Part shown: positions 27,776 through 47,371 of the stretch, piece after piece
Numbering within the stretch: position 1 is the first letter of the stretch
Layout: each line of letters opens with the position of its first letter
Virus record (IMG/VR): IMGVR_UViG_3300036770_008729
Span: 217,115-281,114 of that record
Reading direction: 5' to 3' (one strand)
Length of the DNA: 64,000 nt
Program-made: the position numbers and the translations under genes
The notes under the pieces: model-generated
Seen by the model: the letters and a program-made list of their open reading frames with translations, nothing else
The model's database searches: none
Told to the model about the DNA's origin: nothing

Positions 27776-27866
27776 GAGGATGAGAAGTCCTCTGTGTTGT
27801 AGAAGATTACACATCTATTCTTCTCTTTGCATTTCAGTTTCATTCCTTTCTCAAGGGAACAACACA
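27776..27866 (-). ncRNA. Repeated kissing-loop RNA, copy 2
   Basis: Conserved ends, variable middle relative to 26701-26778. Confidence 0.6.
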
Positions 27867-27874
27867 ATATTTTA

Positions 27875-28089
27875 TAAACAACTACCGCCTTCTAAGTTGG
27901 GTGTTTGTATAGGCCCAAACCCCTATACTCCATCCTTTACATAATTTTTCAATGTATCTATAAACACATTAACCTAAACCACCCACATCTTAGAAATGTG
28001 AGGTAACTCTTCCTACTCTGACATGATTAATAATGACCGTTGATAATCATTAATAGAGTCAATATTTAGTGTTAATCAGTAGTTGTTTA
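27875..28089 (-). ncRNA. Stem-closed RNA (~215 nt) with possible pseudoknot
   Basis: 11-bp terminal IR TAAACAACTAC/GTAGTTGTTTA; several internal helices. Confidence 0.6.
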
Positions 28090-28109
28090 ATATTTCAAAG
28101 AACTATTTG

Positions 28110-28231
28110 TAGTCAGGACAGGATTCGAACCTGTAAGGTAACATTCGGTTTCAAGACTCTCCTCTATACCGATCAGAGGATGTAGTTACCACTTTACTCG
28201 TCTAATGCGTCTACCATTCCGCCACCTGACT
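28110..28231 (-). ncRNA. tRNA-shelled RNA copy 4
   Basis: Leu-like D arm GCGGAATGGTAGACGC; insert closed by GGTAAC/GTTACC. Confidence 0.7.
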
Positions 28232-28236
28232 ATGAA

Positions 28237-28308
28237 ATACCGATGCCTTTACTTTCACGAGGACTTGCGTGTCTTCTTAACATTACTGTCTTAGGACCCC
28301 ATCGGTAT
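28237..28308 (-). ncRNA. Repeated conserved-core RNA, copy 1
   Basis: 9-bp closing helix; core shared with 40994-41064. Confidence 0.6.
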
Positions 28309-28312
28309 ATTA

Positions 28313-28539
28313 TGAATCAATCAAGAGCACTTATCTTTATGTTCAGAAGGTCATTCTCTATTCCACAAATTAATTTTACAGATGGTAGTACTTTTACAAA
28401 AACTTTTGCGTGTTTTATGCTCGGACTTATACACGTTATCAGCCATTAAAAAAGCAGGCCTATCGTAAACACTTACTCAAAGGATGGACATCAAGGAGCC
28501 TAATCCCCAATGAATTGGGTTTAACCAGTGATTGATTCA
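28313..28539 (-). ncRNA. Stem-closed RNA (~227 nt)
   Basis: 11-bp terminal IR TGAATCAATCA/TGATTGATTCA. Confidence 0.5.
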
Positions 28540-28560
28540 ATATATTCAAAGAACTATTTG

Positions 28561-28636
28561 TCGTTAGGGTAGGACTCGAACCTACAATCTTTCGGGATTT
28601 TCACCCGAACGCTCTATCAAATTGAGCCACCTAACT
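28561..28636 (-). tRNA. Atypical tRNA (Phe-like, enlarged anticodon arm)
   Basis: Cloverleaf; TTCGGG-TGAAAAT-CCCGAA arm; A1:G72 mismatch; D loop lacks GG. Confidence 0.55.
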
Positions 28637-28642
28637 ATAATA

Positions 28643-28674
28643 CAAAGATAATAATAATTTTTATTATGACCAAA
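28643..28674 (-). promoter_or_regulatory. Bacteroidota sigma-70-type promoter driving the ncRNA array
   Basis: TTTG-N20-TATCTTTG. Confidence 0.75.
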
Positions 28675-28725
28675 TTTATTCTGCTTTTAAACAATACAAA
28701 AAAACGTAGCGGATTTTTGTATTGT

Positions 28726-29526
28726 TTAAATTGGTAGATTTACTTTGGATAATATTTGGTTCGAAACATGAGTGTAAATTTCAGTAGTTTTTACATTTGA
28801 GTGACCTAATATTTTCTGAATTACTCTTAAATCAGTACCATTTTCCAATAGATTTGTTGCACAACTATGTCTCAATTGGTGAATGTGATATTTTTCACCC
28901 AAATATTTTTTAACAATTTGATTACAGCTACCAGAACTATATTGTAAACTATTTTGACCATTGAAAAGGTATTCTTTTGGTCTATATTCTTTAAAATATT
29001 CTCTAAGTAATTCTAATATTTTCTGGGATAGGGGTAAGACTCTATCTTTTCTACCTTTAGCATTTTTAATATGAATAATCATTCTTTTGGAATCGATATC
29101 TTCAATTTTAAGGTTAATTACTTCCGATACTCTTAATCCGACTGAATAAGTTAAAGATAATATCGTTTTATGTTTAAGATTAGTAATTTTAGATAATTGT
29201 TCTTTAATGTAATCACCATCAATAACCTGTGGTAACTTCTTCTCAGATTTGGGTCTTTTGAAACTAACCTTATCATATTTCTTATTAAGTCCGAATTTGT
29301 AGAGGAAACGGATTGCGTTAATAACCTGATTTTGTTGTGAAACAGAAGTAAAACTATAAGTATCTAAATATGATTGAAAATCATTAGATGTGAGTCTAGT
29401 TGGTGAAATTTTTATTGTAGCTAAAAATTGATTAATATAATGGAGATAGGATTTTATTGTCCTATCTGAGTAATTTAAATACTTCAATTTTTGATTACAA
29501 ATTTCGTAATAATCTGTTTTTTTCAT
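28726..29526 (-). CDS. Tyrosine recombinase (IntI/XerD-like, SAM-like N-terminus)
   Basis: GLRVSE, KGRKDR, HQLRH, LGH, IYTH. Confidence 0.95.
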   Translation of the reverse strand: MKKTDYYEICNQKLKYLNYSDRTIKSYLHYINQFLATIKISPTRLTSNDFQSYLDTYSFTSVSQQNQVINAIRFLYKFGLNKKYDKVSFKRPKSEKKLPQVIDGDYIKEQLSKITNLKHKTILSLTYSVGLRVSEVINLKIEDIDSKRMIIHIKNAKGRKDRVLPLSQKILELLREYFKEYRPKEYLFNGQNSLQYSSGSCNQIVKKYLGEKYHIHQLRHSCATNLLENGTDLRVIQKILGHSNVKTTEIYTHVSNQILSKVNLPI

Positions 29527-29585
29527 ATGTGAAATATATATGAAATAAGAAAAAAAGTTTAATTATAGATATAATCTAGTTAGTG

Positions 29586-29843
29586 TCAATATTGCCTATG
29601 CTTATTTACTACCTCTTTACCGCAGCTTTTACACGTCCACTTACCATACTGCTCGCCATTAACCCCAGTTCGGCTAACGCATTGGCAATACTTTTTGCTT
29701 CGCCCACTAACATCGTGTATGCGTAAGGCTGCTTCGTACCCTGCAATAAAATCTCGTACTTTTTGTTCGTACCATCCTGCATCGTCTATCTTATATCTGA
29801 AACTTTCAGCATATAATTCAGCTTGTTTTTTTATATCTTCCAT
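29586..29843 (-). CDS. Cassette gene, C-terminal zinc ribbon
   Basis: CQC...CKSC; starts inside attC-like site 1. Confidence 0.6.
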   Translation of the reverse strand: MEDIKKQAELYAESFRYKIDDAGWYEQKVRDFIAGYEAALRIHDVSGRSKKYCQCVSRTGVNGEQYGKWTCKSCGKEVVNKHRQY

Positions 29844-29892
29844 TCTAATTAAATTTATCGTTAATAAATCGCCCTACGCATACACGCAGCCG

Positions 29893-30168
29893 TTATACGC
29901 AATTATATAACACCCAATCGTGAATAAATTTTATTGAAGAATTAAAAGCATCAATCCAATCAGGATAACATCCACAATCTTCTTCTACCCATTCACCATT
30001 TTGCTTCCAATAAACATATCCACGCCAACATATGCCAACATCTTCCAGCTTATATCCATCAGCAAGAACTTCAATAAAAATTCCTTTATCTGAATAACTG
30101 CGTATAACAGCAGGTATATTCAATTGCGGTTTCTGTGCTTCATTCAAGTTTTGTTCTTCTATGCTCAT
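29893..30168 (-). CDS. Cassette gene, hypothetical
   Basis: Start reassigned to MSIEEQ inside site 2; stop supplied by GTTA box. Confidence 0.6.
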   Translation of the reverse strand: MSIEEQNLNEAQKPQLNIPAVIRSYSDKGIFIEVLADGYKLEDVGICWRGYVYWKQNGEWVEEDCGCYPDWIDAFNSSIKFIHDWVLYNCV

Positions 30169-40763: not shown

Positions 40764-40892
40764 AAGTCAGGACAGGAATCGAACCTGTGCTGTCATAAAA
40801 GGACTTCGGCCTCGGGTTACATCACGTATAGTTATTTCTAACACCCCGATACTATGCGACGGCTTAAGCGTTTTCCACTCCGCCACCTGACT
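40764..40892 (-). ncRNA. tRNA-shelled RNA copy 5
   Basis: Same AGTCAGG shell; insert with TCGGG/CCCGA helix. Confidence 0.7.
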
Positions 40893-40906
40893 ATTTATAT
40901 TTACAG

Positions 40907-40978
40907 TAGCCCGTACGAGAATCGAACTCGTGTCTACACCGTGAAAGGGTGCCGTCCTAACCCCTAGACGAACGGGCC
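40907..40978 (-). tRNA. tRNA-Glu(TTC)
   Basis: Cloverleaf; near copy of 44884-44955. Confidence 0.9.
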
Positions 40979-40993
40979 AAAATTGTTATTTAA

Positions 40994-41064
40994 TATAGAC
41001 GCCTTTACTTTCACGAGGTCTTGCATATCTTCTTCAGGTATTATCCCTTAGGACTCCGCCTACA
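40994..41064 (-). ncRNA. Repeated conserved-core RNA, copy 2
   Basis: Closing helix TAGGCG/CGTCTA; promoter TTTG-N20-TATGTTTG at 41078-41109. Confidence 0.6.
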
Positions 41065-41120
41065 TCAAATAACAATACAAACATAAGAATAATATTATTA
41101 ATATCCAAATTTATAGAGAA

Positions 41121-41654
41121 TTAATTTATAACCCTATCTAAATTATGAGCTATTACTTTATAAATCGGTAAATCACCATGTGGATCATTTACCTTACCTA
41201 TTGCCGGTTCTACCACCTCAACACCTAATTCCTTAAACTTATTATAATAAAGATTTACCTTTTGTTCCGTAACTGATTTATTACCACCCCATCCCCAAGA
41301 TCCTTTCACTACAAAAAGCTTTGCATTTGGAAACTTCTTTTTAATAACCTCTATTAATCCAGGTATATCTTCATTTAAATTAAAACGCCCATTTGTTCCT
41401 ATATTAATAACTACATTCTTTATATCTTTATTTAGAGAGTATTTACTAACCGCCAACTTTAACCATTCTAAGTTGATACCACCTTTCCATAAAGATGATT
41501 GTTGTGGCTTTTTATCAAGCATCTTTACTTTAGATGATTGTTTGGCGATATAAGGAGTTTGACTATCACCGATTATTATAGAATGTGGATTGGTGGTTAA
41601 TGAGAATCTTGTGAAGATAGATAAGATTATAATAAGTATAATGAGTTTATACAT
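41121..41654 (-). CDS. SGNH/GDSL-like hydrolase, secreted
   Basis: IIGDSQ, IGTNG, DPH. Confidence 0.65.
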   Translation of the reverse strand: MYKLIILIIILSIFTRFSLTTNPHSIIIGDSQTPYIAKQSSKVKMLDKKPQQSSLWKGGINLEWLKLAVSKYSLNKDIKNVVINIGTNGRFNLNEDIPGLIEVIKKKFPNAKLFVVKGSWGWGGNKSVTEQKVNLYYNKFKELGVEVVEPAIGKVNDPHGDLPIYKVIAHNLDRVIN

Positions 41655-41715
41655 ATTATTTATATATCAATTTTATTAATTATAAAAACAATATACAAAA
41701 TTTAATAAATAGTGT

Positions 41716-42393
41716 ATGAGTGGTAGAATCGCACCTAGAATAGTAACCGATAAATTAATCTTATGTTTGGATGCGGCTAACCCTAAATCATATCCTGGTT
41801 CTGGATTGAATTGGAATAATATTACTAATAATAATGTAGATTTTGTATTAAATGGCACTACTTTCAACTCATCAAATGCTGGCTCTTTGGTATTTAATGG
41901 CACTAGTGATTATGGAACTACATCATATAATTCTAATTTTGATTTATCAAGTACTGATTACACATTAGAAGGGTGGTTTAATTCAAACACATTTTCAACA
42001 CAACAATCTTTAATATCTAAAGATACATATGGAATTAATTTTGATTGGTCATTGCTTATATCAGATTCAACAACATTACTTTTTTATAGTAACGGAACTT
42101 CAACAAACGTTACTGCAACTGTACCAACAATGTCTACAGGTCAATGGTATCAATATGTTGTAACTAGTATATCAGAAACGATTAGAATTTATCTAAATGG
42201 TATTTTATATCAAACCGGATCAATGTCTACATCAAACAATAGCCAATCTCAAATTACGGTAGGTTGTTATTCCTGGAATAATCCAGATGCATTTACCAAT
42301 GGTAAAATATCAATATTAAGAGTTTATAGAAAAGGATTAACAGATAGTGAAGTATTGCAAAATTTTAATACTATAAAATGGAGATTTAAGTAA
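41716..42393 (+). CDS. LamG/ConA-like domain protein
   Basis: Paralog of 19462-20145. Confidence 0.8.
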   Translation: MSGRIAPRIVTDKLILCLDAANPKSYPGSGLNWNNITNNNVDFVLNGTTFNSSNAGSLVFNGTSDYGTTSYNSNFDLSSTDYTLEGWFNSNTFSTQQSLISKDTYGINFDWSLLISDSTTLLFYSNGTSTNVTATVPTMSTGQWYQYVVTSISETIRIYLNGILYQTGSMSTSNNSQSQITVGCYSWNNPDAFTNGKISILRVYRKGLTDSEVLQNFNTIKWRFK

Positions 42394-42472
42394 TTGGGAC
42401 GTATCTAGTGTAACAAACATGTATTATATATCAATATTGGTCTTTTAAATTGATATGATTAATATATAGTAA

Positions 42473-43315
42473 ATGATTAGGTCTACTCTTGGAATAATAA
42501 AAGCAGCATCATCTGTATTAGTCGAATATTTTATAGTTGGTGGAGGTGGTAGTTCCGGTGGTAATGGAGGCGGCGGAGGTGGTGCTGGTGGAGTATTAAT
42601 AGGCAGTGAAACATTATTATCAGGAACTGTTTTAACCATATCTGTTGGAAGTGGAGGAACTCCTTATTCTAATGGAGGTCCTTCTAGTATTATAGGTACC
42701 GGACTTTCTAAAACATCTAGCGGCGGTGGTAGAGGTGGAACAAGAGATGGTTCACCCGGTCTTACAGGGGGAAGTGGAGGTGGAGGTTGTGCATCACAAT
42801 CTCCTCCTGCTGGTCCAGCTGGATTCGCCGGTGTATCTGGTCAAGGTAACTCAGGTGGTAGTGGAACTTCATATGCACTATCCACACAAGCTGCTGGTGG
42901 TGGAGGAGGTGGAAAAGGGTCAGTTGGAACCAATGGTTCGGCAACCCAAGGTGGTAATGGAGGAAATGGTTATTTATTAGTTTGGAATAACACAGGATAT
43001 GCTGGTGGTGGTGCTGGATCGGGTCTAAACTATAGTGGTTTTGGTGGAAAAGCTGGAACTGTACAAGCTGGATATGGTGGGGGTGGTCCTCAGAATGGAA
43101 CAAATGTAGGTAGAGTTAATAGCGGAGGTGGTGGGGGAAGTATCGCTAATGGTTTAGGTGGTGGTGATACTGGAGGAGGATTTGCTGGAGGTTCTGGTGT
43201 AGTTATAATTAGATTAAACACATTAGCTTCATCGACTACTGGTCTTCCTACTATATCAGCGAGTGGTTCTTATACTATATATACTTTCACAGGAGGAGGA
43301 ACAATAACAATATAA
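42473..43315 (+). CDS. Glycine-rich putative virion/fibre protein
   Basis: Paralog of 9585-10433. Confidence 0.7.
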   Translation: MIRSTLGIIKAASSVLVEYFIVGGGGSSGGNGGGGGGAGGVLIGSETLLSGTVLTISVGSGGTPYSNGGPSSIIGTGLSKTSSGGGRGGTRDGSPGLTGGSGGGGCASQSPPAGPAGFAGVSGQGNSGGSGTSYALSTQAAGGGGGGKGSVGTNGSATQGGNGGNGYLLVWNNTGYAGGGAGSGLNYSGFGGKAGTVQAGYGGGGPQNGTNVGRVNSGGGGGSIANGLGGGDTGGGFAGGSGVVIIRLNTLASSTTGLPTISASGSYTIYTFTGGGTITI

Positions 43316-43319
43316 TAAT

Positions 43320-43676
43320 ATGGCTCATTTTGCAAGAATAAATAATAATAATGAAGTAATAGAAGTTGTTGTAATAAATAACGGGGTTTTATTAGATGAT
43401 AATGGATTAGAATCCGAAGTTAAAGGCATTGAGTTCTGTAAAACTCTATATGGGTTAGATAGTAATTGGATACAAACTTCATATAATTCAAAATTCCGTG
43501 GAGTTTTTGCAGGTATAGGTTTTACCTATAATGTAGAGAAAGATGTTTTTACACCACCAAAGCCATTTGAATCTTGGTCATTAAGTAGTGATGGGTTTAC
43601 CTGGTTATCACCAGTTCCTTATCCAAGTGATGGTGGTTTTTATATTTGGAGTGAACAAAACTTAAATTGGATTTAA
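43320..43676 (+). CDS. MAHFA-type partner of Gly-rich protein
   Basis: Paralog of 9216-9569. Confidence 0.7.
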   Translation: MAHFARINNNNEVIEVVVINNGVLLDDNGLESEVKGIEFCKTLYGLDSNWIQTSYNSKFRGVFAGIGFTYNVEKDVFTPPKPFESWSLSSDGFTWLSPVPYPSDGGFYIWSEQNLNWI

Positions 43677-43681
43677 AATTG

Positions 43682-43754
43682 TCGGGAAGACAGGACTTGA
43701 ACCTGCGGCCTCCTGGTCCCAAACCAGGCGATCTACCAACTGATCTACTTCCCG
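43682..43754 (-). tRNA. tRNA-Pro(TGG)
   Basis: CCTGG-TTTGGGA-CCAGG. Confidence 0.9.
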
Positions 43755-43759
43755 AAAAT

Positions 43760-43834
43760 TGGCGGTCTATGACGGTTACGATCCGTCTACTTCTGCGTGA
43801 CAGGCAGATATGATAGCCACTTCACCAATAGACC
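43760..43834 (-). tRNA. tRNA-Asp(GTC)
   Basis: TCTGC-CTGTCAC-GCAGA; encoded CCA; T loop ATCGTAA. Confidence 0.9.
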
Positions 43835-43838
43835 TTAG

Positions 43839-43909
43839 TTGTCAGAGATGGAATCGAACCACCATTTTGTGAGCCAAAATCACATGTCCTCCCTTTAGAC
43901 GACCTGACA
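43839..43909 (-). tRNA. tRNA-Gln(TTG)
   Basis: TGTGA-TTTTGGC-TCACA. Confidence 0.85.
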
Positions 43910-43913
43910 GTAT

Positions 43914-43954
43914 AAAAACAAAAAACCCAGTTAATCTGAGACTAACTGGGTTTT
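43914..43954 (-). terminator. Attenuator terminator 1
   Basis: CCCAGTTAGT-CTCAG-ATTAACTGGG-TTTTTTGTTTT directly before tRNA-Gln. Confidence 0.85.
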
Positions 43955-43974
43955 ACAATGTTTATATTAATATC

Positions 43975-44067
43975 TTAAATTGTAAATACATAGTTAGTCC
44001 TTACGGCACGATCTTGGTCTTGCGGTTGAGGTTGATTAACTGGAGTATTTACAATCATATTTTTCAT
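43975..44067 (-). CDS. Leader peptide 1 (Gln/Pro/Asp sensor)
   Basis: MKNMIVNTPVNQPQPQDQDRAVRTNYVFTI*; antiterminator GACTAACT 43992-43999. Confidence 0.85.
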   Translation of the reverse strand: MKNMIVNTPVNQPQPQDQDRAVRTNYVFTI

Positions 44068-44247
44068 TATAGTATATATTAGAATATTTTCTTTTGTTTA
44101 GACAAATATAGAAAAAGTTTTAAATAAATTGAAATTTTTTTTAAAAAAGACAAAACAAAGAAAAAATAATTGATATATAGTGTATATATTGAAACCCAAT
44201 AAAAGAGGAATATATAAACGGGGTTCTTCTGAAATTCAATATTTATT

Positions 44248-44278
44248 TTTGAAAATTAAAAATTAGTAATTATATTTG
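44248..44278 (+). promoter_or_regulatory. Bacteroidota sigma-70-type promoter
   Basis: TTTG-N19-TATATTTG. Confidence 0.75.
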
Positions 44279-44282
44279 TAAA

Positions 44283-44363
44283 ATGAAAACAACATTAAAC
44301 ATAGCGTGTTATTATGAGGGCGGGAATCCAATTCCGGTCAGACTAACAATTGCAATGTTTTAA
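44283..44363 (+). CDS. Leader peptide 2 (Ile/Ala/Tyr/Glu/Gly sensor)
   Basis: MKTTLNIACYYEGGNPIPVRLTIAMF*; antiterminator GTCAGACT 44337-44344. Confidence 0.85.
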   Translation: MKTTLNIACYYEGGNPIPVRLTIAMF

Positions 44364-44385
44364 GTGTTTCATAAAACAAAACAAT

Positions 44386-44422
44386 AACCCAGTCTGATTA
44401 ATTAGATTGGGTTTTTTGTTTT
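44386..44422 (+). terminator. Attenuator terminator 2
   Basis: AACCCAGTCTGAT...ATTAGATTGGGTT-TTTTGTTTT. Confidence 0.85.
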
Positions 44423-44432
44423 AAACACATTT

Positions 44433-44526
44433 GGGAGGCTTCGCCACAAAGAGTCTGTAAAACTCTTCTTCGTTAACAAAATGGTGGCTGGTCTGGAGTT
44501 TAGAGGTTCGATTCTTCGGTCTCCCA
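44433..44526 (+). tRNA. tRNA-Tyr(GTA), non-canonical (no local D arm)
   Basis: AGAGT-CTGTAAA-ACTCT; acceptor GGGAGGC/GTCTCCC. Confidence 0.7.
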
Positions 44527-44534
44527 CAAAATAT

Positions 44535-44608
44535 AGGTGAGTAGCTTAGATGGTAAAAGCATGTGTCTTATACACACAAGATAGTGGGATCGTTACCCAC
44601 CTCACCTA
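44535..44608 (+). tRNA. tRNA-Ile(TAT)
   Basis: TGTGT-CTTATAC-ACACA; T loop ATCGTTA. Confidence 0.85.
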
Positions 44609-44615
44609 CAGAAAA

Positions 44616-44687
44616 GCGAGTATCGTATAATGGTCATTACTCCAGTCTTCCAAACTGGAGATGTCAGTTCGATTCTGACTACTCGCT
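44616..44687 (+). tRNA. tRNA-Gly(TCC)
   Basis: CCAGT-CTTCCAA-ACTGG. Confidence 0.9.
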
Positions 44688-44694
44688 CTAATTT

Positions 44695-44770
44695 GGGGTT
44701 ACATGTTCCAAGGCTTTGGCGAGACTGCTTTGCAAGCAATCTGTGGTGGGTTCGATTCCCACTAGCTCCA
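44695..44770 (+). tRNA. tRNA-Ala(TGC)
   Basis: G3:U70 pair; loop TTTGCAA; weak D arm. Confidence 0.8.
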
Positions 44771-44883
44771 CAAAAAAAATTGAAAAAAGATTTGGTAGAA
44801 TAAAAAACTCTTCTTATCTTTGTAATCAATTAAAACGAAGGTTGGTAATCTACTGTAAAACTCTGGTTTCCTTCTTAAATAAT

Positions 44884-44955
44884 GGTCCGTTCGTCTAGGG
44901 GTCAGGACGACACCCTTTCACGGTGTAGACACGAGTTCGATTCTCGTACGGACTA
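44884..44955 (+). tRNA. tRNA-Glu(TTC)
   Basis: ACACC-CTTTCAC-GGTGT; extra promoter TTTG-N20-TATCTTTG at 44791-44822. Confidence 0.9.
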
Positions 44956-44957
44956 CA

Positions 44958-45108
44958 GCTCATCAGAGTAATTAACTGATGAAGGAGGAACCGTCTTCGA
45001 AGCGGTAAAATGATTAGAGTGTAGGCTGCACACTGGCTCTTGAGTCTTAGACGCGGGTTTAAGATATCGGAGCCGGAGGTTAAAGGATCGTGTCCTTTTT
45101 AATCAGCA
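44958..45108 (+). ncRNA. Unidentified structured RNA (~150 nt)
   Basis: Helices CATCAG/CTGATG, ACCG/CGGT, TGATTA/TAATCA, GGCTC/GAGCC, TCTTAGAC/GTTTAAGA, AAAGGA/TCCTTT. Confidence 0.55.
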
Positions 45109-45162
45109 AATAAAAAATAAAGAGAGAAAAACTTCTTAATATATAGTAATATAATTAATACA

Positions 45163-45267
45163 ATGAAAAATATGAATCTAAATATCAATTTAATGCTCAC
45201 GGTGGTGAATACGTTATGTATTAGACCTACTGAGGGTGAATTTCTATTTAGAGAATTAAGTATGTAA
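45163..45267 (+). CDS. Leader peptide 3 (Asn/Met/Leu/Ile/Thr/Val/Cys/Arg sensor)
   Basis: MKNMNLNINLMLTVVNTLCIRPTEGEFLFRELSM*. Confidence 0.85.
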   Translation: MKNMNLNINLMLTVVNTLCIRPTEGEFLFRELSM

Positions 45268-45292
45268 AATATTTAACTTTAATAAAGTGATT

Positions 45293-45330
45293 AACCCTTA
45301 GATAGAAAAAATCTAAGGGTTTTTTGTTTT
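45293..45330 (+). terminator. Attenuator terminator 3
   Basis: AACCCTTAGAT-AGAAAAA-ATCTAAGGGTT-TTTTGTTTT. Confidence 0.85.
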
Positions 45331-45335
45331 ATACT

Positions 45336-45407
45336 GGAGTAGTAGCTTAATGGGGAAGCAATCGGCTGTTAACCGATAGATTATAGGTTCGAGTCCTATC
45401 TACTCCG
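45336..45407 (+). tRNA. tRNA-Asn(GTT)
   Basis: ATCGG-CTGTTAA-CCGAT. Confidence 0.9.
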
Positions 45408-45413
45408 CAACAC

Positions 45414-45487
45414 TGATGTGTAGCTCAAATGGTCAGAGCGCGAACCTGATAAGTTCGAGGTAGTGGGATCGTTACCCACCACATCAA
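45414..45487 (+). tRNA. tRNA-Ile(GAT)
   Basis: CGAAC-CTGATAA-GTTCG; T loop ATCGTTA. Confidence 0.9.
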
Positions 45488-45496
45488 CAAATAAAT

Positions 45497-45575
45497 GCCC
45501 CAATAACCGAGGTTGCCTTCTAAGCAACTAATCGTAACGGAGTGGAAGATATAGGTTCGAATCCTATTTGGGGTA
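45497..45575 (+). tRNA. tRNA-Arg(TCT), non-canonical (no local D arm)
   Basis: GTTGC-CTTCTAA-GCAAC; acceptor GCCCCAA/TTGGGGT. Confidence 0.7.
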
Positions 45576-45580
45576 CAAAT

Positions 45581-45661
45581 GCCGAGATGGCGGAACGGTA
45601 GACGCGCTAGTCTTAGGAACTAGTGTCTAAAGGCGTGAGGGTTCGATTCCCTCTCTCGGTA
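45581..45661 (+). tRNA. tRNA-Leu(TAG)
   Basis: CTAGT-CTTAGGA-ACTAG; variable arm. Confidence 0.9.
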
Positions 45662-45668
45662 CAAAAAT

Positions 45669-45741
45669 AGTTCTGTAGCTCAGAGGAACGAGCAACTCGC
45701 TTACATCGAGAAGGTCACTGGTTCGATCCCAGTCAGAACTA
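45669..45741 (+). tRNA. tRNA-Val(TAC)
   Basis: CTCG-CTTACAT-CGAG. Confidence 0.9.
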
Positions 45742-45748
45742 CAAATAT

Positions 45749-45821
45749 GACACTGTGTCTGAATGGCTTAGGTCCCGGTCTGCAAAATCGTGGTATGTCG
45801 GTTCGAATCCGACCAGTGTCT
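45749..45821 (+). tRNA. tRNA-Cys(GCA)
   Basis: Loop CTGCAAA; U73. Confidence 0.85.
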
Positions 45822-45828
45822 CAGATAA

Positions 45829-45900
45829 GCTTCTTAAGCATTAATGGTGATGCGCTAGTCTTGTAAACTAGAGAAATCGGATCGTTACCGGTAAGAAGCT
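45829..45900 (+). tRNA. tRNA-Thr(TGT)
   Basis: CTAGT-CTTGTAA-ACTAG; T loop ATCGTTA. Confidence 0.9.
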
Positions 45901-45906
45901 CAAAAT

Positions 45907-45978
45907 AGTTCTGTAGCTTAATGGTAGAGCACTTCCTTGACATGGAAGAGGTAGTCGGATCGTTACCGACCAGAACTA
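45907..45978 (+). tRNA. tRNA-Val(GAC)
   Basis: CTTCC-TTGACAT-GGAAG; T loop ATCGTTA. Confidence 0.9.
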
Positions 45979-45985
45979 CAAAAAT

Positions 45986-46076
45986 GCTCCAGTGGCGAAA
46001 CCTGGTTGAAACGCATAGGACTTAAAATCCTATACCCTTGAGGTAAACATTGTCGGTTCGAATCCGACCTGGAGTA
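45986..46076 (+). tRNA. tRNA-Leu(TAA)
   Basis: TAGGA-CTTAAAA-TCCTA; variable arm. Confidence 0.9.
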
Positions 46077-46082
46077 CAAAAT

Positions 46083-46152
46083 GCCGCGGCTTAGTGGAAA
46101 AGAACCTAATCTCATAAGTTGGGTTAAATGAGTTCGACCCTCATACGCGGTA
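46083..46152 (+). tRNA. tRNA-Met/Ile2(CAT), compact
   Basis: CTAAT-CTCATAA-GTTGG; short D arm. Confidence 0.7.
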
Positions 46153-46249
46153 CAAAAAATAAATTAAAAATATTTGGTAAATTCAAAACTTCTTCCTTTA
46201 TTTGTGTAAAATAAGAAAACAGAGAAAAACTTTTTAATATATAGAAATT

Positions 46250-46345
46250 ATGACAACAATTCGCTCACATAAACATTTTAGTAAATCGAGTAAGTGGTTT
46301 AATACCCGCAGGTTCGGTACTAATAGCGTATTGTTTAAATTTTAA
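46250..46345 (+). CDS. Leader peptide 4 (Arg/Ser/His/Lys/Phe/Trp sensor)
   Basis: MTTIRSHKHFSKSSKWFNTRRFGTNSVLFKF*; antiterminator GGTTCGG 46311-46317. Confidence 0.85.
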   Translation: MTTIRSHKHFSKSSKWFNTRRFGTNSVLFKF

Positions 46346-46371
46346 TTTAATTATAATAACAATATTCAATT

Positions 46372-46406
46372 AACCCGAACCGTAAAAAGTTCGGGTTTTT
46401 TGTTTT
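46372..46406 (+). terminator. Attenuator terminator 4
   Basis: AACCCGAAC-CGTAAAAA-GTTCGGGTT-TTTTGTTTT. Confidence 0.85.
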
Positions 46407-46417
46407 AAACATATTTT

Positions 46418-46490
46418 GGAATCTAAGCTAATCAGGTGAAAGCACTGGACTGAAAATCCAGAGAGTCCGGATCGTTACCGGAAGATTCCA
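46418..46490 (+). tRNA. tRNA-Phe(GAA)
   Basis: CTGGA-CTGAAAA-TCCAG; T loop ATCGTTA. Confidence 0.9.
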
Positions 46491-46495
46491 CAAAT

Positions 46496-46569
46496 GGTGA
46501 ATGTAGCTCAATTGGTAGAGCGCTTGATTGTGGTTCAAGAGGTAGCGGGATCGTAACCCGTCATTTACC
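46496..46569 (+). tRNA. tRNA-His(GTG)
   Basis: G-1/C73; CTTGA-TTGTGGT-TCAAG; T loop ATCGTAA. Confidence 0.9.
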
Positions 46570-46578
46570 CAAATATAC

Positions 46579-46649
46579 ACACGATACAGACAAGGTGTCG
46601 GTCAGGTCTCCAAAACCTCGATGGGTGAGTTCGATTCTTACATCGTGTG
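46579..46649 (+). tRNA. tRNA-Trp(CCA)
   Basis: AGGT-CTCCAAA-ACCT. Confidence 0.8.
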
Positions 46650-46668
46650 CAAAAAAAAGAATAAGAAA

Positions 46669-46686
46669 ATGAAACGAAAACGTTAA
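46669..46686 (+). CDS. Mini leader MKRKR* followed by hairpin 46686-46715
   Basis: ATG AAA CGA AAA CGT TAA after A-rich tract; precedes tRNA-Lys(TTT) and tRNA-Arg(ACG). Confidence 0.55.
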   Translation: MKRKR

Positions 46687-46727
46687 GTGATGACTAAAGC
46701 TATTAGGTCATCACTCATAAAAAATAT

Positions 46728-46800
46728 GACTTCGTAGCTTAGTAGGTAGAGCACCTGGCTTTTAACCAGGGGGTCGCGAGTTCGAATCTCGCCGGAGTCA
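46728..46800 (+). tRNA. tRNA-Lys(TTT)
   Basis: CCTGG-CTTTTAA-CCAGG. Confidence 0.9.
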
Positions 46801-46812
46801 CAAAAATATAAT

Positions 46813-46947
46813 GGGGATGTAGCTCAGTGGTAGAGTTTTAAAATATCTCTTTTGAGGTTTTACCTCTTGAAAAGGAGTGTTGATTAAAAGAGTTACTTCG
46901 TTTGAATTGAAATCAAAAGGTCGTGGGTTCGAATCCCACCATCCCCG
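46813..46947 (+). tRNA. tRNA (TGA anticodon) with ~60-nt hairpin inserted between D and anticodon arms
   Basis: GGGGATG/CATCCCC, G73; TTTGA-ATTGAAA-TCAAA. Confidence 0.65.
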
Positions 46948-46952
46948 CAAAT

Positions 46953-47025
46953 AGTCTTATCGTCTAATTGGAAAGACGTCTGAATACGAATCAGGAGATT
47001 GAGGGTTCGAGTCCTTCTAAGACTA
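46953..47025 (+). tRNA. tRNA-Arg(ACG)
   Basis: TCTGA-ATACGAA-TCAGG. Confidence 0.85.
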
Positions 47026-47029
47026 CAAT

Positions 47030-47113
47030 GGAGAGCGTCCGGATGGTCGAGGATGGCGTCTTGAAAACGTTCTGGGTGTAATAGCTTCTGGGGTTCGAAT
47101 CCCTAGCTCTCCG
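47030..47113 (+). tRNA. tRNA-Ser(TGA)
   Basis: Loop CTTGAAA; long variable region; G73. Confidence 0.85.
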
Positions 47114-47118
47114 CAAAA

Positions 47119-47204
47119 GGAAAATAAACTAATCAGGGTATTAGTCACGATTGGAAATCGTTGAGTTCGTTAATTTGGATGTGGTTCGAGTCCACTGTTT
47201 TCCG
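47119..47204 (+). tRNA. tRNA-Ser(GGA)
   Basis: ACGA-TTGGAAA-TCGT; G73. Confidence 0.8.
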
Positions 47205-47208
47205 CTAA

Positions 47209-47295
47209 GGAAGATTGACCGAGAGGTAAGGTACCAGTTTGCTAAACTGAGGTTAGGTCTTAAAGCCTAGACAGGATCGTTACCTGTATCTTCCG
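47209..47295 (+). tRNA. tRNA-Ser(GCT)
   Basis: CAGT-TTGCTAA-ACTG; T loop ATCGTTA. Confidence 0.85.
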
Positions 47296-47371
47296 CATTT
47301 TGATACAATCTATTTTTTTATAATAATTATAATATTATATATACATAACTAAAATAACTTTAGTTTAAATT

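Follow-up and report, generated by a model that had tools for sequence, protein, structure and literature searches.

The variant tRNA genes and their cluster

A cluster of tRNA genes lies within a 64,000-nucleotide stretch of DNA (hereafter, the window; positions 217,115 to 281,114 of the 281,114-base IMG/VR virus record IMGVR_UViG_3300036770_008729), belonging to a large freshwater phage that encodes about 30 tRNA genes in total (Table 1). Eight of these genes carry a T arm in which the almost universal U54·A58 reverse-Hoogsteen pair of the T loop is replaced by A54·U58. The 11-mer GGATCGT(T/A)ACC has 8 exact matches in the window, against 0.00 expected in 100 dinucleotide-preserving shuffles, with none elsewhere in the virus record, and each match forms the T arm of a tRNA called by ARAGORN.

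Table 1. Variant tRNA genes and the cluster that contains them (positions in the window; T arms given as stem-loop-stem).
Feature	Position	Strand	T arm	Residue 15	Residue 48	Rfam score (bits)	11-mer match	Remarks
tRNA-Asp(GTC)	43760..43834	-	gacgg-ATCGTAA-ccgtc	G	A	52.4	43774-43784 (-)	Only one of the eight whose ARAGORN-printed sequence ends in CCA
tRNA-Ile(TAT)	44535..44609	+	gtggg-ATCGTTA-cccac	G	A	61.1	44587-44597
tRNA-Ile(GAT)	45414..45488	+	gtggg-ATCGTTA-cccac	A	A	60.2	45466-45476	Arm identical to that of Ile-TAT; same isoacceptor carries the variant in LR745206.1 and LR756502.1
tRNA-Thr(TGT)	45829..45901	+	atcgg-ATCGTTA-ccggt	A	A	45.3
tRNA-Val(GAC)	45907..45979	+	gtcgg-ATCGTTA-ccgac	A	A	61.1
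tRNA-Phe(GAA)	46418..46491	+	tccgg-ATCGTTA-ccgga	A	G	54
tRNA-His(GTG)	46497..46570	+	gcggg-ATCGTAA-cccgt	A	A	57.7		G-1 encoded
tRNA-Ser(GCT)	47209..47296	+	acagg-ATCGTTA-cctgt		A (position before the T stem)		47274-47284	Class II
tRNA gene cluster	40764..47296	.						Eight variant genes among 14 canonical-loop ARAGORN tRNAs (Glu x2, Pro, Gln, Gly, Asn, Leu x2, Val-TAC, Cys, Lys, Arg, Ser x2) and about six further low-scoring or insert-bearing tRNA-like genes; three short ORFs between the tRNA blocks

All eight genes pass the gathering score of 29 bits for the Rfam tRNA family (RF00005), seven of them matching model positions 1-71 at 45.3-61.1 bits, with Ser-GCT called as a tRNA by ARAGORN. The ARAGORN structure strings give a 5-bp stem and the 7-nt loop ATCGT(T/A)A in every case; and, for Thr and Val-GAC, the Rfam alignment places A, U, C, G, U, U, A of the gene opposite consensus U54 U55 C56 g57 A58 a59 U60 at full posterior probability. 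The assignment of A to position 54 and U to position 58 is therefore right, and the original prediction, that a swapped T loop is shared by eight tRNAs of unrelated isotypes, is confirmed as an observation.

The change is, however, more than a two-base swap, a point that the original prediction missed. All eight variant tRNAs also carry A60 and a purine at position 48 (A in seven, G in Phe). By contrast, the other 19 ARAGORN tRNAs of the genome have TTCRA loops with a pyrimidine at position 60 (A60 in 0/19), and those with a short variable loop have a pyrimidine at 48. Restricting the comparison to cleanly parsed genes, a purine at 48 is present in 7/7 variant and 0/14 canonical class-I tRNAs (p = 8.6e-6), with Ser-GCT also having A there; the ARAGORN parse of position 48 is approximate where variable loops are unusual. 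The remaining elbow contacts are retained, as all eight have the D-loop GG (G18 G19), U55, C56 and G53:C61.

It is possible that such genes are decaying, or serve as tRNA-like elements outside translation, given that phage tRNA arrays contain odd members and that this cluster has several low-scoring or insert-bearing tRNA-like genes. We consider this very unlikely: the eight variant genes have complete cloverleaves with 7-nt anticodon loops, whereas the odd genes of the cluster all have canonical T loops. Furthermore, in an alignment of 15 sequences, 14 of them variant tRNA-His genes (one row, the Patescibacteria tRNA-His at locus L364, was entered on the wrong strand), 17 of 20 helix pairs show compensatory change, with such changes in all stems, and G-1 of tRNA-His is kept. 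Orthologs in LR745206.1 and LR756502.1 likewise keep the loop while the stems change, and none of the eight anticodons has a canonical duplicate in this phage.

Covariation across phage tRNAs

In a pooled set of 1263 unique phage tRNAs, positions 54/58 are T/A in 1132, A/T in 105, A/A in 10 and T/T in 0, which argues that the two positions still pair in the variant. A60 occurs in 81/93 variant against 24/828 canonical tRNAs (p = 1.5e-80), and a purine at 48 in 70/93 against 128/828 (p = 2.1e-32); inside the variant class, A60 goes with the purine at 48 (67/81 against 3/12, p = 1e-4). In variant loops, U55 is kept in 97/105, C56 in 105/105, G53:C61 in 99/105 and G52:C62 in 99/105. The pool includes loci picked for a variant T arm and many related arrays, such that the sequences are not independent and the isotype frequencies in particular are biased; with that proviso, Val-GAC is the isoacceptor that most often carries the variant (12 of 14), whilst none was seen in 140 Leu, 86 Arg or 45 Pro tRNAs.

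The constraint on position 58 is not absolute. Freshwater contigs related to this phage show, in tRNA-Phe, a compensatory change of pair 51:63 together with T58>A (places 46468, 46475 and 46480), giving an A54/A58 intermediate, and the relative LR745206.1 has a tRNA-His with an A54/A58/A60 loop (ATCAAAA).

Distribution in phages and cells

That the variant might simply be common in host tRNAs had been named beforehand as grounds for rejecting the idea; both phage and cellular sequences were surveyed. In a control sample of viral contigs chosen by a canonical T arm, which is the cleaner set but holds only 13 variant tRNAs, the swap is carried by 13/596 tRNAs (2.2%) and 7/104 loci. It is also present in the syntenic arrays of the 634-642 kb ‘Mahaphage’ relatives and, as a minimal form (A54/U58), in tRNA-His of the cultured Vibrio phage Ceto and Aeromonas phage Aes012. 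Carrier contigs span 27-66% G+C.

Across one genome each of 185,579 species, the commonest variant T arm lies in tRNAs of only 17: 12 Patescibacteria tRNA-Met, 3 archaeal loci and two further loci that sit in phage-like tRNA arrays. In Bacteroidota, a host phylum predicted only for the closest relatives of this phage (PMC7162821), 0 of 30 sampled pattern hits in 301 genomes lie in tRNAs, and 41 unique tRNAs are all T54/A58 with a pyrimidine at 60. As far as these samples reach, the variant is not a copy of host tRNAs, and the phage tRNAs do differ from those sampled in that phylum.

The review PMC7912444 treats U54/A58 as universal, with only the eukaryotic initiator as an exception, and text searches of the literature found no description of A54/U58 loops and no paper describing the coordinated variant.

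Origin of the variant T arms

The original prediction had offered exchange of T arms as one source of the variant, which in its local form would involve one variant arm being copied, by exchange or gene conversion inside the cluster, onto neighbouring genes of other isotypes. The two Ile genes do share an identical 17-nt T arm while differing elsewhere, and as position 48 abuts the T stem, a copied tract could carry it along. However, the other six T stems all differ, and each variant arm is shared with the same isoacceptor in other genomes, distant ones included, rather than with its neighbours. The His stem gcggg/cccgt recurs at the loci labelled L049 and L410 (the latter in LR745206.1), in phage Ceto and in the Patescibacteria tRNA-His at L364; the Thr arm atcgg/ccggt is identical in the close relatives L181 and L182; and the Val-GAC stem gtcgg recurs at locus L046. 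In addition, the Val-GAC stem equals that of its canonical-loop neighbours Cys and Leu-TAA, so stem and loop do not travel together. Local T-arm exchange is therefore not supported, and is already largely refuted.

A proposed alternative elbow for phage tRNAs

Synthesising these observations, we propose, with a probability of roughly 0.6, that these are eight functional elongator tRNA genes of a large freshwater phage related to the ‘Mahaphage’ huge phages, which carry a co-adapted alternative elbow. In this view, the tertiary pair 54·58 is inverted, position 60 is A instead of a pyrimidine, and position 48, the partner of 15 in the Levitt pair on which nucleotide 59 stacks, is a purine; whilst the contacts that build the L shape (U55, C56, G53:C61, G52:C62 and the D-loop GG) are kept. 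The tRNA should then still fold and be used in translation, but would lack the U54 and A58 that host T-loop enzymes modify or read. The module would be inherited along isoacceptor lineages (His, Val-GAC, Ile, Thr-UGU, Phe, Asp, Asn, Ser-GCU and Ala) that circulate among very different phages and turn up in a few Patescibacteria and archaea, being neither made by local T-arm exchange nor copied from the tRNAs of the likely host phylum.

What the analysis itself establishes are the sequence states, their covariation, the conservation of the loop alongside compensatory stem changes, the enrichment in phages and the scarcity in cells. In the T-loop structural motif, position 1 of the loop pairs with position 5 by trans Watson-Crick/Hoogsteen contacts, and 59-60 are bulged. 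Here the geometry of the A54·U58 pair, the intercalation gap for G18 and the roles of A60 and the purine at 48 are inferred from covariation and from textbook tRNA structure; likewise inferred, as no RNA run was found to hold the locus, are expression, modification, CCA-tailing, aminoacylation and use on the ribosome, for which compensatory changes and conserved identity elements such as G-1 of tRNA-His give indirect support only, together with any selective benefit. We suggest that the benefit is most likely to be insensitivity to host proteins that bind, modify or cut the canonical T loop, although no nuclease or modification enzyme whose action would be blocked was identified in a host.

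The interpretation first placed upon the swap is thus supported only in part. The inversion in unrelated isotypes holds, and by sequence it removes the m5U54 and m1A58 targets. Of the two origins suggested, selection is favoured: the loop stays fixed while stems change with compensation, four sites covary, and each variant loop carries a GATC although the genome avoids this motif (observed/expected 0.42). Escape from nucleases that read the T arm is plausible, but rests here on sequence alone.

It remains possible, if less likely in our view, that the variant is neutral or nearly so; simply a second workable solution for the elbow that arose a few times, hitch-hikes with particular tRNA gene lineages that move between phages, persists because phage tRNAs are under weaker or different constraint, and gives no benefit against host enzymes. 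The distribution is certainly patchy: close relatives differ in which isoacceptors carry the variant (Ile-TAT is variant here and canonical in L181/L182, and Asn is the reverse), variant and canonical copies of the same anticodon coexist in relatives (Thr-TGT; and Phe, where the variant ortholog in LR745206.1 lies next to a canonical copy, at L410), the A54/A58 intermediates described above exist, a few cellular lineages use the variant for single tRNAs, and no partner enzyme or nuclease was found. Set against this, four sites must change together and T54/T58 is never seen in the pooled set, so that the paths between the two states are narrow; the loop is held fixed over large divergence and despite GATC avoidance; and there is both strong enrichment in phages over cells and strong isotype bias.

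A further, improbable, reading is that the variant elbow serves as a recognition mark for a phage-encoded partner, be it the phage's own CCA-adding enzyme, or a factor that spares phage tRNAs while host tRNAs are attacked. CCA-adding enzymes hold the tRNA by its elbow, the phage encodes a PolyA_pol/CCA-adding family protein (113.6 bits; G000:C1:96615-96983 of the phage sequence, outside the window), and seven of the eight variant genes, as printed by ARAGORN, do not end in CCA. Yet only 11 of 49 variant-bearing viral records, and only 1 of the 6 that are at least 90% complete, have a match over the family's cut-off, and the 19 canonical tRNAs of this phage mostly lack an encoded CCA too, so the enzyme is not specific to the variant class. 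No TruB, TrmA or Rnl2-type ligase gene is present in the phage.

We also speculate, while regarding it as unlikely on present evidence, that a purine at 48 with A54, U58 and A60 defines a distinct structural class of tRNA elbow, an ‘inverted T loop’, which phages maintain because it makes selected isoacceptors invisible to host proteins that recognise, modify or cut the canonical TΨC loop. This would be a second, elbow-based route of tRNA-level counter-defence, beside the known anticodon-arm route, and the presence of the variant in single tRNAs of Patescibacteria and some archaea would then reflect exchange with, or the same pressure from, their own viruses.

Relation to known tRNAs

Relative to canonical bacterial and phage elongator tRNAs, the variant genes share the full cloverleaf, the 5-bp T stem with G53:C61, the 7-nt T loop with U55 and C56, the D-loop GG, standard anticodon loops and scores above the Rfam gathering threshold; they differ in having A54, U58 and A60 in place of U54, A58 and a pyrimidine, and a purine in place of a pyrimidine at 48, such that the m5U54 and m1A58 sites do not exist.

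The T loop of eukaryotic cytoplasmic initiator tRNA-Met (A54, A60, m1A58) offers a partial parallel, being the one exception to U54 named in PMC7912444, where A54 pairs with A58. A60 is also a feature of initiators. The phage variants have A54 and A60, but position 58 is U in all eight, none has a CAU anticodon, they are elongators of eight anticodons, and a purine at 48 is part of the pattern.

Purine-purine 15·48 pairs in cellular tRNAs, such as G15·G48 of E. coli tRNA-Cys, and the T-loop variants reportedly selected in vivo (G54·A58 and G54·G58), show that the 15·48 layer and the 54·58 pair tolerate non-standard partners in working tRNAs; neither is known to combine an inverted A54·U58 with A60 and a purine at 48, or to be linked to phages.

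Finally, phage tRNAs that resist host tRNA nucleases (mycobacteriophage tRNAs; T5 tRNA-Lys against PARIS; tRNA-Tyr against retron-Eco7 PtuAB; phage tRNA-Thr(UGU) against P2 OLD) are, as here, phage-encoded copies of host-type tRNAs that differ at otherwise conserved positions, and Thr-UGU is among the variant isoacceptors of the present phage (PMC10264068, PMC10802454, PMC12445682). In the published cases that we found, the resistance determinants all lie in the anticodon loop or stem, whereas here the change is in the elbow, with no nuclease known to which it might respond.

Genomic context

The window forms the last 64 kb of a 281,114-base IMG/VR virus record (G000) that is classed as 'provirus' with an estimated completeness of 94%. 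It has a G+C content of about 30% and reads well under the standard code, with ORFs of 80 aa or more covering 86% under translation table 11, such that no alternative genetic code was needed. A PrkA-like protein of the record is 86% identical to those of the 634 kb and 642 kb uncultured phages LR745206.1 and LR756502.1 (the 'Mahaphage' relatives), which also give the best DNA matches to the tRNA region. Nearly identical copies of that region occur in subsurface and freshwater metagenomes from 13 studies, but a search for RNA runs containing it found none. A search of the neighbouring ORFs gave no tRNA-related Pfam domain.

The genome has 27 tRNAs called by ARAGORN under default settings, eight with a variant T loop and 19 with TTCRA, although the full set is larger; about six further low-scoring or insert-bearing tRNA-like genes in the cluster also have canonical loops. 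These, together with other features encountered during the analysis, are collected in the table below.

Additional features of the phage record and of related loci
Location	Strand	Feature
Window 46813-46948	+	tRNA-like gene with normal acceptor, D and T arms (canonical TTCGAAT loop), in which an insert of about 82 nt sits where the 17-nt anticodon arm should be; called by ARAGORN only with introns allowed; Rfam gives only a sub-threshold tmRNA-like hit (21.6 bits); contigs from other organisms in freshwater runs join 46835/6 to 46917/20 with an ordinary anticodon arm in between
Window 40764-40892	-	Second tRNA with an insert; Rfam tRNA score of 36.7 bits over model positions 1-71 across 129 nt; ARAGORN with introns allowed gives a 58-nt intron in the anticodon loop (Arg-CCT by its reading)
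Window 44433-44527, 44695-44771, 45497-45575, 46078-46145, 46579-46650	+	Further tRNA-like genes missed by default ARAGORN, including an Ala-TGC-like and a Trp-CCA-like gene (found at a lowered threshold), an Rfam tRNA hit of 38.7 bits and a CAT-anticodon gene; all have canonical TTCGA loops
Window 28560-28636	-	tRNA-Phe with the unusual anticodon AAA (A34), far from the main cluster; canonical T loop
Window 44284-44364, 45165-45269, 46251-46346	+	Three short ORFs (about 26-34 codons) interleaved with the tRNA blocks, each preceded by a similar AT-rich stretch containing TTAATATATAG or TTGATATATAG and followed by a hairpin plus T-run of the form AACCC...GGGTTTTTT; they look like small independent transcription units
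G000:C1:88500-90422 and 27826-29994 (outside the window; loci L173:12500-14422 and L170:8826-10994)		PrkA/YeaG-like serine kinase homolog (full-length match to phrog_22605; 86% identical to the Mahaphage copies) and Lon-like ATP-dependent protease (phrog_4871, E = 5.5e-251)
L160:7127-7143 and L168:4055-4071 (loci from bacterial genome bins)		High-G+C, phage-like tRNA arrays containing a tRNA with anticodon UCA (it would read UGA) and the variant T arm GTGGGATCGTTACCCAC; not called by ARAGORN
L029, L054, L245 (viral contigs)		Some variant tRNA-Val(GAC) genes with AGCGTAA loops, that is G55 instead of U55, in which even the Ψ55 site is gone; they also encode CCA

A coordinated change at four positions

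The original prediction, that eight tRNAs of unrelated isotypes carry an inverted 54/58 pair, proved to be correct. GGATCGTWACC occurs eight times in the window, against none in 100 shuffles, and nowhere else in the record; each copy is the T arm of a tRNA gene, namely Asp-GTC, Ile-TAT, Ile-GAT, Thr-TGT, Val-GAC, Phe-GAA, His-GTG and Ser-GCT. All eight pass the Rfam gathering score, seven of them at 45-61 bits, and the ARAGORN structure strings give a 5-bp stem and the 7-nt loop ATCGT(T/A)A. The covariance-model alignment places these letters opposite U54 U55 C56 G57 A58 N59 U60 at full posterior probability, so the numbering A54/U58 is correct, and both chance occurrence and mis-numbering can be rejected.

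The change amounts to more than a swap, as all eight genes also have A at position 60 and a purine at position 48 (A in seven, G in Phe). No canonical tRNA of the phage has A60, and all 14 canonical class-I tRNAs that parse cleanly have a pyrimidine at 48, giving standard G15·C48 or A15·U48 pairs; the split is 7/7 against 0/14 (p = 8.6e-6). To place this in a wider setting, we pooled 1263 unique tRNAs from this genome, two Mahaphage loci and 183 IMG/VR loci, bearing in mind that these sequences are not independent and that some of the loci were picked for the variant. Positions 54/58 are T/A in 1132, A/T in 105, A/A in 10, a handful of other states, and T/T in none. Counting only tRNAs with a cleanly parsed short variable loop, and with the assignment of position 48 dependent on the ARAGORN parse, A60 occurs in 81/93 variant (A54/T58) against 24/828 canonical (T54/A58) tRNAs (p = 1.5e-80), and a purine at 48 in 70/93 against 128/828 (p = 2.1e-32).

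Within the swapped class, A60 and R48 go together (67/81 against 3/12, p = 1e-4), so there is a minimal form (A54/U58 only) and a full module (R48/A54/U58/A60), with the eight tRNAs of the window all being of the latter kind. In swapped loops U55 is kept in 97/105, C56 in 105/105, and G53:C61 and G52:C62 in 99/105 each, whilst D-loop length, the position of GG, and nucleotides 14, 21, 46 and 47 do not differ clearly between variant and canonical tRNAs. In established tRNA structure, the 54·58 pair stacks on 53:61 and nucleotide 59 stacks on the 15·48 pair; we infer from this, rather than from any three-dimensional model, that the four changed positions lie in adjacent layers of the elbow-core junction. 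We also observed a bias towards G34 among the variant tRNAs, both in this genome (6/8 against 3/19, p = 0.006) and in the pooled set (57% against 28%), but this could not be separated from isotype bias.

Evidence for function and selection

Orthologs in the syntenic arrays of LR745206.1 and LR756502.1 keep the variant loop in Ile-GAT, Thr-TGT and Val-GAC while the T stems change with compensation (gtggg/cccac, gtggg/cccgc, ctggg/cccag), and the Phe-His pair is likewise variant in LR745206.1. An alignment of variant tRNA-His genes from very different contigs shows compensatory change in 17 of 20 helix pairs and keeps the encoded G-1; of its 15 rows, 14 are such genes and one (locus L364) was entered on the wrong strand. 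None of the eight anticodons has a canonical duplicate in this phage.

Across the whole record, the window included, several 4-bp palindromes are strongly under-represented against a second-order expectation (observed/expected of 0.42 for GATC, 0.44 for CATG, 0.46 for GTAC and 0.49 for CTAG), whereas TCGA, AATT and TATA are near 1, which suggests pressure from restriction systems. The genome thus avoids GATC, yet each variant loop contains one.

Distribution in phages

The exact Ile T arm GTGGGATCGTTACCCAC occurs in 65 stretches of IMG/VR, in 41 of which it lies inside an ARAGORN tRNA, and many of these arrays have further variant loops on other stems and isotypes. As a control, we retrieved 118 loci by the canonical counterpart GTGGGTTCGAATCCCAC (a lower bound on the number in the database), among which 13 of 596 tRNAs (2.2%) and 7 of 104 tRNA-bearing loci carry A54/T58. 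Carrier contigs span 27-66% G+C, and eight variant tRNAs is the highest count that we saw in one genome, the next being six and five. Among cultured phages, Vibrio phage Ceto (Demerecviridae) has a tRNA-His with the loop ATCGTAC and Aeromonas phage Aes012 (Straboviridae) a tRNA-His with ATCATCC, whereas T5 and Bacillus phage G have no variant loops. The spread across isotypes is uneven: the variant is common in Val-GAC, His, Ile, Ala, Phe, Asn, Asp, Ser-GCT and Thr-TGT, but absent from 140 Leu, 86 Arg and 45 Pro genes, although this tabulation is biased by how the loci were picked.

Distribution in cells

Short patterns proved to be a poor guide in whole genomes, as 11- and 13-mers hit coding DNA often (all 17 hits in one Pedobacter genome, for example, lie outside tRNAs) and a reversed-pattern control underestimates this coding noise; counts alone are useless here, and every claim rests on examination of the individual loci with ARAGORN. 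Scanned through one genome for each of 185,579 species, GTGGGATCGTWACCCAC was found in 95 stretches, of which only 15 lie in ARAGORN tRNAs: 12 tRNA-Met(CAT) genes of Patescibacteria, a tRNA-Tyr and a tRNA-Thr of Hadesarchaea, and a tRNA-Ala of Woesearchaeota. Two more sit in phage-like high-G+C tRNA arrays, as the UCA-anticodon tRNAs listed in the table, and the rest are coding DNA.

In 301 Bacteroidota genomes the 13-mer SGGATCGTWACCS hits about 0.9 times per genome, with none of 30 sampled hits in or near a tRNA, and 41 unique Bacteroidota tRNAs from five genomes, a sample of best-scoring tRNAs, are all T54/A58/Y60. In 81 Patescibacteria genomes the same pattern found a tRNA-His whose T arm equals that of the phage, and a tRNA-Met, both with A48 and A60. 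Cells can thus use the module, but rarely and for single tRNAs; and whilst cellular sampling beyond one T-arm sequence is thin, the idea that the phage genes are copies of host tRNAs is not supported.

Origin of the variant

The original prediction had offered selection or T-arm exchange as explanations for the inverted pair, and of these the second, as exchange between genes inside the cluster, is not supported. The eight T stems differ, except for those of the two Ile genes, and each variant arm is shared with the same isoacceptor elsewhere: the His arm with L049 and L410 (labels of retrieved loci, as are those that follow), phage Ceto and the Patescibacteria gene; the Thr arm with L181 and L182; and the Val-GAC stem with L046. 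The module therefore travels with whole tRNA genes, rather than by exchange between neighbours.

Which isoacceptors carry the module differs between close relatives, with Ile-TAT being variant here and canonical there, and Asn and Val-TAC the reverse; relatives also hold variant and canonical copies of one anticodon side by side, as seen for Thr-TGT and for Phe. An A54/A58/A60 tRNA-His in LR745206.1 and a T58>A tRNA-Phe in related strains are possible intermediates, the latter coming from reads of four freshwater runs that were mostly noise from other organisms' tRNAs at 80% likeness, and in which only the tRNA-Phe T-arm variants were usable.

Possible mechanism and significance

Synthesising these findings, what the sequences themselves demonstrate is a co-varying, conserved and phage-enriched alternative to the canonical elbow, in which m5U54 and m1A58 cannot be made, U55 is still present and the D-loop partners are intact; how the altered nucleotides sit within the elbow, the use of these tRNAs in translation, and any benefit to the phage are our inferences. 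The interpretation offered by the original prediction is thus supported in part: the loss of the two modification sites follows directly from the sequence and selection is favoured, T-arm exchange is not supported, and evasion of nucleases that read the T arm is plausible, but only as an inference. A neutral variant, carried along with particular tRNA lineages, remains a serious rival; however, the four-site covariation, the constancy of the loop, the isotype bias and the retained GATC lead us to favour selection.

We also considered whether the variant might be tied to a partner encoded by the phage. The phage does encode a CCA-adding family enzyme, but no TruB, TrmA or Rnl2-type RNA ligase was found, and the CCA-adding enzyme is not a regular companion of the variant, being found in 11 of 49 carrier records and in 1 of 6 near-complete ones, such that an obligatory link can be rejected.

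U54·A58 is one of the most conserved tertiary pairs in biology, and is also the docking site of widespread modification enzymes (m5U54, Ψ55, m1A58). A natural four-site alternative that keeps working would give structural biologists a compensatory 'experiment of nature' on how the tRNA elbow is built, as well as a ready marker for tRNA lineages of phage origin in metagenomes. Should the variant block host enzymes or nucleases, it would open a new front in the phage-host conflict over tRNAs, and it could also provide parts for orthogonal tRNAs; that two cultured phages, Ceto and Aes012, carry the minimal form makes the question directly testable.

Literature searches on A54/U58, on the loop sequences and on phage T-loop variants found nothing relevant, although coverage of subscription journals was limited, such that an older mention cannot be excluded. 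A review of T-loop conservation names only the eukaryotic initiator as an exception to U54 (PMC7912444), whereas the tRNAs described here depart from the canonical elbow at positions 48, 54, 58 and 60. Published cases of phage tRNAs escaping host nucleases all map to the anticodon arm (PMC10264068, PMC10802454, PMC12445682); an escape based on the elbow, were it to occur, would be new.
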